A DNA stretch of 56,970 nucleotides from Macrostomum lignano (Eukaryota). The position numbers were made by a program, and so were the translations under genes. Position 1 is the first letter of the stretch. Every line of letters begins with the position of its first letter. Shown in pieces: positions 2,067-27,110 of this stretch. The notes under the pieces are model-generated. The model saw only the letters and a list, made by a program, of their open reading frames with translations. It had not been told where the DNA came from and did no database searches. The stretch spans positions 1 to 56,970 of the forward strand of contig NIVC01002328.1 of the NCBI GenBank assembly GCA_002269645.1, given 5' to 3'.

Positions 2067-2430
2067 AGTAGTAGGTAAAAGTACGCTTCTAGCCCCAGAA
2101 CCCCTATTTAACATGCTGATTTGAAGGGCTAGTGGGGGACACGAGGGGGTACTAAAAAAACACATCTAAATACCCTTTACCCCCCTTAAACACACTACCT
2201 CCCACTACCTCTCACAAACTCTCACAATCACTACCAACTCACACAAAACAACACAATATTCACCCAAATCACCCAAATCATCAATAACAATCCCCTCGCG
2301 TCCCCCATTAATAGCCCTTCAAATCATCATTTTCAATAGGTCTGATCTAGAAGCGTTCTTTTACCTACTACTACTTTATAACCCCAGGCCGCGCCGCAGG
2401 CGCGTAGGGTCTTTTTCTGTTACTAAAAAT
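2067..2430 (+). repeat. Left terminal inverted repeat (self-palindromic over 2067-2372)
   Basis: Reverse complement of 19237-19600; starts AGTAGTAGGTAAAAGTACGCTTCTAG. Confidence 0.95.
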
Positions 2431-2440
2431 AGAACAAAAA

Positions 2441-2851
2441 ATGACACACGTTACACATGTGCAAAATATAAATGAGTATCAGGTAGGAGATCCAATTGAA
2501 TACCGAGGTGAGGGACTTTTTGATTTGGTTGGAACAGCAGCAAATTTTGTTAAAGACAATATGGGGCTTATAGGGCAAGCTGGCTCTGCAGCAGGCTCTA
2601 TAACCAACGCCGTAAAGGGCGGAATTGATGCAGCTAGATCAGCAGAAGAACTAAAGAAATTGAGAGAATTTAACGATACCCTCTCACAGATAAAAGCAAT
2701 AAAAGATTTGAAATTAGCACAGGAAGCAACCCAAGCCGCACAACCAACAGAAACCCCCACGAAAAGCGCACCAATAAGTAATAAAGATATTCAGGATTTT
2801 AATAAAATGTTAAATACTATTAAAGGTGGAAAAGGATTAAAGAAATTTTAA
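2441..2851 (+). CDS. Small Gly/Ala-rich putative virion protein (136 aa)
   Basis: Intact ORF with AAAAATG start; GEGLF and GGKGL motifs shared with neighbouring virion-type genes; no family recognised. Confidence 0.6.
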   Translation: MTHVTHVQNINEYQVGDPIEYRGEGLFDLVGTAANFVKDNMGLIGQAGSAAGSITNAVKGGIDAARSAEELKKLREFNDTLSQIKAIKDLKLAQEATQAAQPTETPTKSAPISNKDIQDFNKMLNTIKGGKGLKKF

Positions 2852-2861
2852 CAATATAAAA

Positions 2862-23604: not shown

Positions 23605-24683
23605 TACGATAAAGTCCTGTCTTTGTAAACCCATTGATTATAAAACTGGATGTGATAGAATATTGAATAAAATATTTCAAGATGAATTAATAATTGCAAA
23701 TCGTATTAAAACGATTCAGATGCATCTTGGATCTCTTTATGAAGGCTACCGGACATTTGCCCTCCGGCATTTGCCCTCCGGACATTTGCCCTCCGGCATT
23801 TCCCCTCCGGACATTTGCCCTCGAGGACATTTGCCCTCGGGGACATTTGCCCTCCGGACATTTGCCCTCCGGACATTTGCCCTCCGGACATTTCCCCTCT
23901 GGAAAAGTACAGGTAAGGCTGGGGATAGGGTAGGGCGCGGGTATATATTGCTTACTAGAAAAGGATGAGTTGTTGGCTGGAGAAGAACCTGATGGATGCA
24001 AGAGGCGGGAGGATGAGGTTGGTGCTGGAGGAACGACGGGTGGGTACAGGAGGAGGTGAGGTGAGTAATGTGCGAGGGGGTAAATTTGCAGAGGGCAAAT
24101 GTGCGGAGGGGAAATGTCCGGAGGGCAAATGTCCGGAGGGCAAATGTCCGGAGGGCAAATGTCCCCGAGGGCAAATGTCCCCGAGGGGAAATGTCCGGAG
24201 GGCAAATGTCCGGAGGGGAAATGTCCCGGAGGGCAAATGTCCGGAGGGCAAACGCCGCCGAGGGGAAGTGCCGGAGGGCAAGTGCCGGAGGGGAAGTGCC
24301 GGAGGGCAAATGTCCGGAAGCGCTTTATGAATTATTAGCTATTAAACATTTTGGTTTTGAAAAAGTAAAGAAAATTGATTTAGTACATAATGATCGTAAA
24401 GTTGCGTTAGAGTCGAAATCTTCTGATAATACCGATAGTTCTTCAAGCCGATTTAGAAATATTCAAAAGTTGTTGGAGTTTAAAAATATTAATCCTGAAT
24501 TTGATTTGTATTATTTTTGCATTAATAACACTAAAAACCCAATACAAAAAGAATTTGATAATGCTGTTACCTTTAACTGGGGAATTTGCTTTAATTTTTT
24601 TGTATGGTGATAAATATTTGGAAATTATTAAATTGATAGAAGATTGTTTTTTAAGCATTAAAAATGAACTAAATTGTGTATGA
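23597..24683 (+). pseudogene. PD-(D/E)xK restriction-like endonuclease (Eco47II-like), interrupted by a MITE and a frameshift near 24570
   Basis: After removing the MITE: IQMHLGSLYELLAIKHFGFEKVKKIDLVHNDRKVALESKSSDNTDSSSSRFRNIQKL...LTGEFALIFLYG; family assignment is from motif recall (ExKxxxNTxxSSS). Confidence 0.62.
23744..24322. mobile_element. Foldback/MULE-type MITE (579 bp) with 9-bp TSD
   Basis: TSD CTTTATGAA at 23735-23743 and 24323-24331; inverted arms made of 15-bp GGACATTTGCCCTCC tandem units. Confidence 0.9.
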
Positions 24684-26244
24684 AGGTGGATTGTTGGATA
24701 TTCAGAAAGGATTAACAAGCTTACCACCAATATTTACTTGTGGGAAATATACAAATGAATCGCATATTCCGGCTATTCGTTTGCAGGTTACTCGTGGCCT
24801 GAGTGGTAGAAGCAAAGCTACTGCTAGTCACTATTTGTGGCGACACCTTCAAATTGCGTGAAAGCCGTCATACAGCTTCAAGTACCACTTCAATTGAGAA
24901 ATCTTTTAAAGGAACAGAGGTAACTCTCTTCCCACTGGTAAAAAGCTTGAAGACAAGGTGGCAATGCGCAGCCAAGCTCCTAAGTTGATAATTCAGTATG
25001 GAGAAGGTTCAGAGAGCAGACGGAAGTGGATGGTAATTTAGCTACTTAAGGTGTGCTCCAGCCTCTATCGAAAGACAGAGCGTAAACTGCCGGGGACTCG
25101 GTTAGATTTGAGATTAAATCCTGATGACACACCAAAAGCTGATTCAATTCCCATCAACGGTATTGATTGGTTAGCATATTATCATGACTTAGCATACAGA
25201 AATGCCGACAAGAATTCTCCTGAGGAAGCATTAAGATTAAAGCATGAAGCTGATCGAAAGATGATTGAGGGATTAGATAATTTACAGGGATTATCGGTAA
25301 GCCAAAGATTAACTCAATGGGTGGTTAAAAAGATTCTGCAATCTAAAGTTAAATTTGGTTTAGGAATTAATTACAATCAACATGGAAATAATTGTGTTGA
25401 CTGTCTGTTATTACTCATCTGTGGATTAAGTTCTGATGAGGCAAAAACACTTCATAAAGAATACCGAAAACCGAAATTTTACCGAAAAATCATGAACTTC
25501 AAAAAGAATGAAATTTGGTATGCTAACTTAATGTCGATGCCGAATGACAGAGGATATAAGTATATTTTAACTATATTAGATGGTTTTACTCGATATGCGC
25601 GTGGGCTATTCCATTGAAATCCAAAAAAGGTGAAGTTGTTGCTGCTGCTTTTAGAAGTATTGGGGAGAAAAGCGAGCGTTTATGTGTTGATGAAGGAAAA
25701 GAATTTTACAATCCTCATATGTATAAATTATATCATTTTGAGAAAGGAAAAGAAAGGAAAAAGGACGCAAGCGGTGAGTATATCAATAAGATTTATTCTA
25801 TTTATGGCGAAAGCAAAAACGCGTTAATAGAGAGATTTAATAGAACTTTGGGGAAGAAATTGTGGTTTCAGTTCAGTCTTAACGGTAACCAAATGTGGGT
25901 AAAAAATATTACCAGATGTAGTAAAAGATTATAATAATTCATATCATTCGGCGATAAATATGACTCCACAACAAGCTTATAACAATCCTGAAAATGTTAA
26001 AGTTACTTTTAGGGAAGTTGAAAAAAATAAAAAGAAATTTTTTAAAGTTGGTGATCAAGTATATATTTATAAATGGAAAGATAAATTTGAAAAAGGTCGA
26101 AAAGGCAACTGGAAGATTAGTGAGAAATTCATTGTAAGTAAAGTTTTAAATACAAATCCTACAACTTATATCATTGCCGATAAAGATGGTCAAGAAATAT
26201 TAGGATCATTTTATGAGAATCAATTACTTAAGGCAACAAGGTAA
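24664..26244 (+). pseudogene. PLA2-integrase, copy 2 (intron-containing, degraded)
   Basis: Matches 17108-18685; premature TAA at codon 3 and several frameshifts. Confidence 0.88.
24789..25089 (+). ncRNA. Group IC1 intron, copy 2 (301 nt)
   Basis: Same insertion site (GCA GGT|CCG GGG); P/Q/R/S conserved; 11-nt receptor CCUAAG...UAUGG; terminal omega-G at 25089. Confidence 0.92.
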
Positions 26245-26709
26245 TAAATTTTTATAACAAACAAAAACAATATTATTACTATTATTGTTACTAAAATAAT
26301 TATTGACATTTGTTCAACTGTTATCAAGCTTACATTTTCATTAAGTTCATTAACTGTTACATTACCAATGTAGGAATAATTTAACTTCATTTTTTTACAT
26401 AAAAATTTCACTTCGATTGTCTGAATCACTAGTTTCATATGAACTATTTGTTGACTCAGAATCGATTGATCGCATCTCCCAATCGTCTGAATTTAAATAA
26501 TCTTCAAGTTGAAATATTAACTCACACTCTTGTTCAAAATCGTATAAACCATCCAACTCTAGCGGATAAAGTTTTAGTTCCTGCCCATCGTCGTATTTTA
26601 AATAAACTTCATCTATTATTCCATTCAATATATGCTGTTTTATTATCTCTGAATTCTTAGCAACAGTTTCAAAAGTATCGCTTACAGAAAAGGTGTAAAC
26701 TCGGTTCAT
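26220..26709 (-). CDS. Copy 2 orthologues of the small TM and acidic terminal genes
   Basis: ORFs 26220-26438 and 26395-26709 match 18696-19238. Confidence 0.7.
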
Positions 26710-27110
26710 TTTTTGTAACAGAAAAAAGCCTTTTGTGCCCCAAGCGCCTGCGGCGCGGGCGGGGGTTAGAAAGAGTTGTGGGTGTTGGAAGTGTTGGAAG
26801 AGTTAGTAAGTGTTGGTTGTGTAGTAGTAGGTAAAAGTACGCGTATAGGACTGTGCACCTATTAAACATACGATTTGAAGGTCTTGTGGGGGGTACTAGG
26901 GGGTTAGATTCAGATTGTGTTTTTGGTTTTTTTCGATTGTTGGGGATGATTGGAAATGTTTATTTGTGTTTATTGTTTTTTTTTCAATTGTTGGGGAGAT
27001 TAGATGTGTTTATTTGTGTTTTTTAAGTTTCCCCCTAGTACCTCCCACCAGACCTTCAAATCGTATGTTTAATAGGTGCTCTCAGGGATAGACTCGTACT
27101 TTTACCTACT
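26708..27110 (-). repeat. Right TIR of Polinton copy 2 (self-palindromic 26823-27110)
   Basis: AGTAGTAGGTAAAAGTACG ... GTACTTTTACCTACT with long inverted arms. Confidence 0.85.

Follow-up and report, generated by a model that had tools for sequence, protein, structure and literature searches.

Absence of GGNCC from a clade of Polinton-like elements and its possible origin in a restriction-type nuclease associated with a group I intron

Loss of restriction sites is a textbook mark of the conflict between phages and bacteria, and the evolutionary link between restriction enzymes and homing endonucleases has long been discussed. Group I introns are spread by intron-encoded endonucleases such as I-TevI of the phage T4 td intron and I-Ssp6803I, which is of the PD-(D/E)XK type, and since the known homing endonucleases recognise about 14-40 bp, they place no burden on the remainder of the genome. 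Restriction-modification systems are encoded by chloroviruses and other giant viruses, which protect themselves by methylation. A further arrangement in phages, collaborative homing, reportedly set out by Bonocora and Shub in 2009 (cited in PMC11296320), is said to bring together a group I intron lacking an open reading frame (ORF) and an adjoining free-standing endonuclease whose site the intron interrupts. We know of no example of restriction-site avoidance in a eukaryotic virus-like element, or of one driven by the avoiders' own nuclease, and a literature search found none. Here, we analysed a contig of 56,970 nt from Macrostomum lignano (NIVC01002328.1, assembly GCA_002269645.1; hereafter the window), which holds two adjoining Polinton-like elements at positions 2067-27110 without a single GGNCC, together with relatives of these elements (loci with L numbers, proteins with P numbers). 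The family and fold of a nuclease gene, the avoided word and the insertion point of a group I intron converge on the same five bases and thereby point to a homing nuclease with a restriction-like short specificity. We put at about 0.6 the probability that a restriction-type nuclease with a 5-bp target is the homing nuclease of this intron and forces the genome-wide avoidance of GGNCC in the clade.

In phages, plasmids and bacteria, Type II-like sites are lost from genomes (Rusinov et al., 2018, PMC6286503), and the enzymes of the Eco47II/Sau96I and EcoO109I/AvaII groups have the targets GGNCC, RGGNCCY and GGWCC (PMC10305163, PMC7337904). The PLA2 domain is known in Polintons and adintoviruses (PMC8502044, PMC11296320), and a study reporting group I introns in cryptophyte Polinton-like viruses also mentions giant-virus restriction-modification systems (PMC12220804). 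Full-text searches of the literature on Polinton-like viruses returned reports of PLA2 domains, group I introns and free-standing HNH and GIY-YIG genes, and found none of an Eco47II-like nuclease, a PLA2-loop intron or oligonucleotide avoidance.

Absence of GGNCC from the window elements and their clade

The whole window contains 57 GGNCC sites, none of them within 1680-28275, and the absence from the two elements (25,044 bp, 33.7% GC) that the original prediction had proposed from a manual scan was borne out by a count of 0 against 16-36 expected (20.0, 35.6, 26.1 and 15.8 under Markov models of order 0, 1, 2 and 3, respectively). Simulated Markov chains gave 35.5 ± 6.3 sites at order 1 (minimum 19) and 26.6 ± 4.7 at order 2 (minimum 11). 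When palindromic 4-, 5- and 6-mer patterns were compared, GGNCC ranked first in depletion and was the strongest outlier of all 128 (P = 3e-16 at order 1 and 5e-12 at order 2), and GGWCC and GGSCC were each absent separately. Neither element 1 (0 vs. 11-22 expected) nor element 2 (0 vs. 4.5-13 expected) carries the word, and because they are only 76-91% identical to each other, they represent partly independent samples of the avoidance. The six sites that had been located in the left host flank (196, 309, 747, 867, 1638 and 1675) are exactly right, and the control words noted in the viral DNA all occur there (GGCC 15, CCGG 48, GATC 70, CCTGG 3, GGATCC 1 and GGTACC 4). The dipeptide Gly-Pro is likewise missing from the element 1 ORFs, as had been noticed (0 vs. 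9.8 expected, with 6 Pro-Gly), which is an automatic consequence of the missing GGNCC in the DNA.

The notion that the decayed element 2 should by now have regained GGNCC was considered and rejected, as its 155 5-mers that are one change away from the word would yield only 1-4 new sites at 2-8% divergence; a count of zero in this copy is therefore unremarkable. The word CCNGG is 2.5-3 fold under-represented in the window elements (14 vs. 35-42 expected), a deficit that the relatives do not have.

Relatives were gathered with the PLA2-integrase and the nuclease as probes, since a search with the capsid protein gave too few (two relatives only, none in IMG/VR), and their element segments were bounded by gene content, irrespective of site counts. 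In 11 segments of close relatives, 108 kb in all, GGNCC occurs twice where 50-73 occurrences are expected, and both of these sites are the PLA2-loop Gly-Pro codons of the intron-less loci L004 and L009, and the close-clade proteins contain 1 Gly-Pro against 31 expected, with 34 Pro-Gly. Among short loci with at least 44% integrase identity, GGNCC was found only at the PLA2 loop, and none was found in the intron-bearing L094 (about 4 expected) and L092 (about 6 expected). The original prediction had raised the question of whether intron-less relatives hold GGNCC and Gly-Pro elsewhere; in the intron-less L004, L009, L024, L026 and L044 the only GGNCC is that of the PLA2 loop. The absence covers non-coding DNA, all three reading frames and lineages that are only 46-50% identical in protein. 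The host flanks contain 95 GGNCC against 114-130 expected, about one per 500 bp, and in L007, L008, L010 and L011 these sites end at the element boundary. In 72 more distant PLA2-integrase loci (255 kb), 171 sites were counted against 230-240 expected, a ratio of 0.74 that resembles those of several other palindromes. Therefore, with near-zero counts in the close clade and only this mild deficit in the distant loci, full avoidance is a trait of the intron/nuclease clade.

A further word, AGNCT, is under-represented in all close-clade elements (90 vs. 171-264 expected) and not absent, and CTNAG is so more mildly; this may be a codon or stop-codon effect.

A group I intron and an Eco47II-family nuclease at the PLA2 loop

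Both window elements have an insertion in the PLA2-integrase gene that matches the group I intron family of Rfam (RF00028), with 63.1 bits at 17227-17530 in copy 1 and 53.5 bits at 24765-25080 in copy 2, compared with 65.3 bits in L005, 52.0 bits in L092 and a gathering threshold of 50 bits. A scan of 101 kb with Rfam at this threshold did not pick up the introns of L006-L008, which were recovered by blastn and nhmmer with the intron core. The exon junctions were set by comparison with intron-less and intron-bearing relatives. Since P0003, which among the intron-less homologues is the closest (71% identity), has an uninterrupted NFTGPGTRLE, the junctions were placed, at GGT|CCC (copy 1) and GGT|CCG (copy 2), just where the original prediction had put them inside the Gly-Pro site; exon 2 of element 1 then starts at 17540 with CCC GGC ACT (PGT), and the joined peptide NFTG|PGTRLD agrees with P0003 in a frame that is continuous across GGT|CCN. 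Placing the start of exon 2 nine nt further upstream, where the Rfam match stops, was rejected, since G-P-G-T of the intron-less relatives has no additional residues and in every other intron the final G is immediately followed by CCN. The 223-aa ORF ending in GHTG (15866-16537) was also rejected as exon 1, the true position of which is fixed by the relatives.

The same junctions were found in seven independent loci (window copies 1 and 2, L005, L006, L008, L092 and L094), and L007, L022 and L093 carry the same intron family at a position that is partly readable. Wherever both junctions can be read, the intron lies at GGT|CCN, and the GG|CC of the PLA2 Gly-Pro is split in every intron-bearing relative. 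Compensatory changes affect 17 of the 60 predicted core pairs, and the P1 helix covaries with the exon, reading ACAGGU/GGCCUG in one lineage and UUAGGU/GGCCUAA in another; these changes in the core and at the P1-exon pairing indicate that the intron ribozyme is under selection. All of the 5′ exons end in GGU, and the terminal intron G is present in copy 2, L005, L006, L008, L092 and L094, with copy 1 departing at one conserved position. The score, the compensatory changes, the exon U paired with G in P1 and the terminal G mark these insertions as group I introns for which self-splicing is predicted. Lineages whose integrases are 34-59% identical share this intron at one and the same site. The most distant of them, L092 (IMG/VR UViG_3300027939_000003; integrase identity only 34%), has it at GGT|CCT (L092:3261-3582), and no Eco47II-like gene was found in the 10.7 kb of this locus. 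The association may extend well beyond the close clade.

The intron of L005 holds a 233-aa ORF, whose sole significant Pfam match is RE_Eco47II (PF09553), and 13 homologues of this nuclease share a conserved D...ELK...TDNSSSR core and have C-termini that run into the ribozyme core. PD-(D/E)XK genes of the Eco47II family were found in window copy 2 (broken), L001 and L005-L010, and the introns of L005-L008, L093 and L094 house the nuclease ORF, which continues into the ribozyme core. PF09553 is the top Pfam match of every nuclease member tested, above its curated cut-off of 25.9 bits in the L009 nuclease (37.7 bits), P0133 (34.2 bits) and P0126 (30.2 bits). A profile search for the wider family gave 314 cluster representatives, to which identity is about 30% or less and of which 81 of the 88 sampled match PF09553. 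Conservation of the residues D65, E76 and K78 is complete or almost complete. An AlphaFold model showed an alpha/beta core (pLDDT 85-95), and its best structural match in PDB was EcoO109I (E = 6.6e-5, probability 1.00), followed by the nuclease domains of McrC, DdmD, Hef and BamHI. Sequence searches of NCBIfam, PHROGs and PDB gave no match for the nuclease, and BFVD gave weak generic PD-(D/E)XK matches only. The motif and the modelled fold place the element nuclease in the RE_Eco47II family, homologues of Eco47II have been assigned the target GGNCC (PMC10305163), and EcoO109I cuts RG^GNCCY (PMC7337904). Judging from the family, the fold match to EcoO109I, the genome-wide avoidance and the position of the intron, the element nuclease probably cuts GGNCC.

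Neither the window ORFs scanned nor the Pfam annotations precomputed for L005-L011, L093 and L094 showed a DNA methyltransferase domain, and because no such gene was found beside it, the nuclease appears to be a solitary enzyme and not part of a restriction-modification system. The original prediction of a lineage that lives with a GGNCC nuclease and purges its sites instead of methylating them is thus supported by the presence of the Eco47II-family gene, the lack of a detected methyltransferase and the clade-wide avoidance; its further idea of the intron as the sole keeper of Gly-Pro did not hold.

The window copy of the nuclease, which is free-standing in element 2, is broken twice, by a large insertion of palindromic tandem repeats and by a frameshift, and its D...ExK motif is still readable; it has no Pfam match of its own and was assigned by homology (68% identity to P0123; hidden Markov model E = 1e-29). 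The block that splits it consists of about 0.6 kb of 15-nt tandem repeats and forms a long imperfect palindrome with arms of up to 103 nt that are 97% complementary; it is rich in GG and CC, yet holds no GGNCC. The slot directly upstream of the PLA2-integrase gene, which is occupied by an HNH-like gene (window 16558-17130), by an Eco47II-like gene (window 23597-24683 and L010:9441-9974) or, in L092, by a GIY-YIG gene (L092:2804-3145), looks like a hotspot for mobile nuclease genes.

At the PLA2 loop, alleles with and without the intron coexist. An intron with the nuclease inside is found in L005-L008, L093 and L094, and an ORF-less intron with an adjoining nuclease gene is found in window copy 2 (Eco47II-like), window copy 1 (HNH-like) and L092 (GIY-YIG). 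Intron-less alleles whose only GGNCC coincides with the Gly-Pro codons are those of L004, L009, L024, L026 and L044, the intron-bearing alleles having no loop site; L009 also carries a free-standing Eco47II-family gene elsewhere. In the intron-less L010 (nuclease gene directly upstream), L011 and L012, proline is replaced and the loop reads GAQ. Across the relatives, GPG is the commonest loop motif, and GAQ, GAN and GTG substitute for it, with Ala or Thr in place of Pro and GGNCC thereby removed. Intron-plus, site-bearing intron-minus and nuclease-bearing relatives co-occur in the same samples. A nuclease gene inside or beside the intron, together with intron-less alleles whose intact target is disrupted by the insertion, is what would be expected of a homing intron. 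A GGWCC-specific enzyme, from which intron-less alleles would escape by means of GGS-CCN, was rejected, since L024 and L044 use GGT CCG and GGSCC is also depleted.

Gene content and surroundings of the two elements

Element 1 encodes a polymerase, a fibre-like protein, a protease-like ORF, a penton-like ORF, an A32-like ATPase, a capsid protein and the PLA2-integrase, and is bounded by inverted repeats of about 360-530 bp (Table 1). No target-site duplication was visible around it, as it abuts element 2, which starts within a protease homologue. The polymerase is 41-46% identical to the L006 polymerases, and the relatives match PF03175; a polymerase with an HNH insert is of the 'pPolB2' type, reported from oomycete and terrestrial-nematode Polintons (bioRxiv 10.1101/2023.08.22.554363), and its presence here and in L006 and L011 may hint at the host group. 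The integrase scored 31 bits against rve, just below the cut-off, and has 988 homologues, and the capsid relatives carry a DJR-like domain. With a PolB, an rve integrase, a DJR capsid protein, an A32-like ATPase and inverted repeats, the window elements can be classed as Polinton/Maverick-like on their predicted gene content. Element 1 is itself damaged, in the polymerase (a stop and a frameshift), in the HNH-like ORF (a stop) and at one atypical intron nucleotide, and the breaks listed for the genes of element 2 are minimum counts. The fibre-like ORF (10010-12058) holds six tandem 57-nt (19-aa) repeats at 11522-11977 on the minus strand.

Table 1. Positions of the elements, genes and introns in the window and the state of the element 2 genes.
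Feature	Position	Strand	Remarks
GGNCC-free stretch (26.6 kb)	1680-28275	both	site counts and Markov expectations
Element 1, Polinton-like (17.5 kb)	2067-19600		ends are terminal inverted repeats
Left terminal inverted repeat, element 1	2067-2430		93-100% complementary to 19237-19600
Protein-primed DNA polymerase B with Endonuclease_7/HNH insert, element 1	4161-7744	+	one in-frame stop and one frameshift
A32-like packaging ATPase, element 1	13551-14348	-	Pox_A32 30.2 bits
Major capsid protein, element 1	14368-15831	-	database relatives only P0001 and P0002 (46-49% identity)
HNH-like free-standing nuclease ORF, element 1	16558-17130	+	directly upstream of exon 1; one in-frame stop
PLA2-integrase exon 1, element 1	17108-17236	+	ends Asn-Phe-Thr-Gly (GGT)
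Group I intron, element 1	17237-17539	+	predicted; no ORF; between GGT and CCC
PLA2-integrase exon 2, element 1	17540-18685	+	begins Pro-Gly-Thr-Arg-Leu-Asp; HDxxY motif and rve integrase core
Right terminal inverted repeat, element 1	19237-19600
Element 2	19601-27110		5′-truncated, heavily decayed relative; 76-91% identity to 12490-19600 of element 1
Penton, element 2			1 frameshift, 2 in-frame stops
ATPase, element 2			1 frameshift, 5 in-frame stops
Capsid, element 2			4 frameshifts, 3 in-frame stops
223-aa gene, element 2			1 frameshift, 1 in-frame stop
Eco47II-family nuclease pseudogene, element 2	23597-24683	+	free-standing, directly upstream of exon 1
PLA2-integrase gene with intron, element 2	24664-26244	+	at least one frameshift in exon 1, 4 in-frame stops in exon 2
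Group I intron, element 2	24789-25089	+	predicted; no ORF; between GGT and CCG
Integrase exon 2, element 2			0 frameshifts, 4 in-frame stops

Outside the elements, a 23-nt tandem array extends from the right end of element 2 (27090-27305) and an 11-nt array lies further out (27983-28103); both are covered by the GGNCC-free stretch, which reaches 28275. Transposon remnants abound on the host side (28000-57000): fragments of retrotransposon gag and integrase lie at 34027-36730, a low-complexity block rich in purines at 41000-43200, an OTU protease ORF at 47092-48258 and a pogo-type DDE_1 transposase at 48646-50643. Among the relatives, L093 has a long terminal repeat retrotransposon inserted at L093:6343-9975, and L006:8265-8382 matches the Rfam microRNA precursor MIR7504 on both strands (87 and 85 bits), which is probably merely a long hairpin in the element.

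Explanations and relation to known systems

The results suggest the following mechanism. An Eco47II-family nuclease with the predicted target GGNCC would circulate in this Polinton-like clade without a partner methyltransferase, its gene usually lying within the group I intron and sometimes free-standing directly upstream of the intron-bearing PLA2-integrase gene. With a target of only five bases, any exposed genome would have to be free of GGNCC, and the clade would have purged the word from coding and non-coding DNA, and Gly-Pro from its proteins along with it. The Gly-Pro in the calcium loop of PLA2 would be the place where GGNCC tends to survive; it is there, at GGT|CCN, that the intron lies, so that intron-bearing alleles would be site-free, intron-less alleles would carry a single site as the homing target, and a third allele class that lost the proline would be immune. 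Because the insertion destroys the nuclease target, an ordinary selfish homing intron fits, the unusual part being a target of only 5 bp. Cutting would then drive both the avoidance and the intron homing, with exposure also in trans between co-resident elements, and the system in the window would be a fossil, with the nuclease of copy 2 broken and an HNH-like gene in the same slot of copy 1. For the fuller version, in which a Type II restriction-family enzyme, still recognising five bases, became the homing nuclease of a group I intron, site-free carriers survive and alleles cycle at one constrained position, we see even odds.

Several observations weigh against this interpretation. The intron-less L009 (14.7 kb) has an apparently intact Eco47II-family gene (L009:8135-8722, minus strand) and at the same time a single GGGCC at L009:3511, which persists either because one site is tolerated, because timing or compartment protects it, or because the L009 paralogue differs. 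Element 1 and L011 avoid GGNCC fully and have no nuclease gene in the sequence at hand, which requires exposure in trans or recent loss. With regard to the co-occurrence of avoidance, intron and nuclease that the original prediction had called for, avoidance does track the nuclease/intron clade, and the loop site of L009 and the missing genes of element 1 and L011 weigh against it. For the intron-encoded P0123, P0125, P0127 and P0129 and for the L010 gene, PF09553 scores of 18.7-25.6 bits fall short of the cut-off, which only the more divergent nuclease relatives exceed, and specificity can shift within restriction-enzyme families. The decayed integrated relative L093 has one GGNCC outside the loop (L093:5457), the only one seen in the clade; the intron of copy 1 differs at one conserved splice-relevant nucleotide from the state in copy 2 and all relatives; the nuclease gene of the window itself is broken; and short contigs from metagenomes make up many of the relatives.

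As the source of the avoidance, chance is effectively refuted, as are base composition, codon usage and mutational processes of the host, for instance decay driven by methylation: the elements are indeed AT-rich (25-36% GC), and distant relatives and host flanks show a mild deficit (observed/expected 0.74), but the expectations already include mono- to tetranucleotide composition, the sister word CCNGG is not absent, the absence spans non-coding DNA, every frame and divergent lineages, and the surviving sites fall on one codon pair only. An indispensable intron, as put forward in the original prediction, in which the Gly-Pro of PLA2 is unchangeable and the intron is the sole way to hide its site, would account for the insertion exactly at GG|CC in all intron-bearing relatives and for GPG as the commonest loop motif. 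We consider it very unlikely, since five loci within the avoiding clade (L004, L009, L024, L026 and L044) keep the intact site without an intron, one of these, L009, encodes an apparently intact nuclease, which is the very combination that was named as decisive against the idea, and GAQ, GAN and GTG loops removed the site by substitution, including that of the nuclease-carrying L010.

Two further explanations concern the source and the role of the cutting. Avoidance might be imposed by an outside nuclease, of the host, a co-infecting giant virus or an associated bacterium, with the element gene incidental, and the avoiding elements that lack a nuclease gene in the sequence at hand would fit; it would then be a striking coincidence that the elements carry a gene from the single Pfam family whose name comes from a GGNCC enzyme, and a coincidence again that the intron carrying this gene sits inside a GGNCC, and the host flanks are not depleted, so that we hold an outside source to be unlikely. 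The nuclease might instead be mainly a weapon, a methylase-less enzyme that shreds host or competitor viral DNA and recognises self as site-free, with its link to the intron secondary. Host flanks with GGNCC about every 500 bp would be its substrate, L009, L010 and window copy 2 hold a free-standing version of the gene, and avoidance is also seen in elements without it. Against this role stand the location of the gene, mostly inside the intron and reading into its core in the classic layout of a homing endonuclease, and the position of the intron within the predicted target, which is expected from homing and unexplained by a weapon. We regard a predominant weapon role as possible and rather improbable; the weapon and homing roles are not mutually exclusive and cannot be separated with these data.

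If the homing-nuclease explanation is right, restriction enzymes and homing endonucleases would have a living intermediate in this clade, and a selfish intron would constrain every gene of its carrier and dictate the oligonucleotide content of a clade, as its Gly-Pro count illustrates. One clade would also show the full series from a free-standing nuclease beside an ORF-less intron to a nuclease within the intron. A lack of GGNCC combined with an intron at GGT|CCN could serve as a simple signature of the clade in assemblies.

Compared with the avoidance of palindromes in phages, plasmids and bacteria, the elements share the methylation-free escape by genome-wide loss of sites; here, however, the avoiders are eukaryotic virus-like elements, the nuclease is carried on their own mobile intron and is not that of a host, and the purge is essentially complete, with a whole dipeptide gone from the proteome. 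Like chlorovirus and giant-virus systems, they combine a eukaryotic virus with a Type II-like nuclease, whereas protection here would consist in having no sites. With the bacterial Eco47II/Sau96I and EcoO109I/AvaII enzymes they share PF09553, the D...ExK motif and, in EcoO109I, the closest solved fold, but the bacterial enzymes are paired with a C5-cytosine methyltransferase and none was found in the elements. As in group I intron homing, an ORF lies in the intron, the presumed target is split by the insertion and kept in intron-less alleles, and degenerate nuclease copies are common; the difference is a Type II restriction family with a predicted 5-bp target, the footprint in the genomes suggesting that the short specificity was kept. 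The layout of collaborative homing recurs in the window, where both introns are ORF-less and a free-standing nuclease gene lies upstream of a short exon 1, and the relatives, with the nuclease inside the intron, would represent the next stage; whereas that arrangement has so far been one of phages, here it would involve eukaryotic Polinton-like elements with a restriction-type nuclease.

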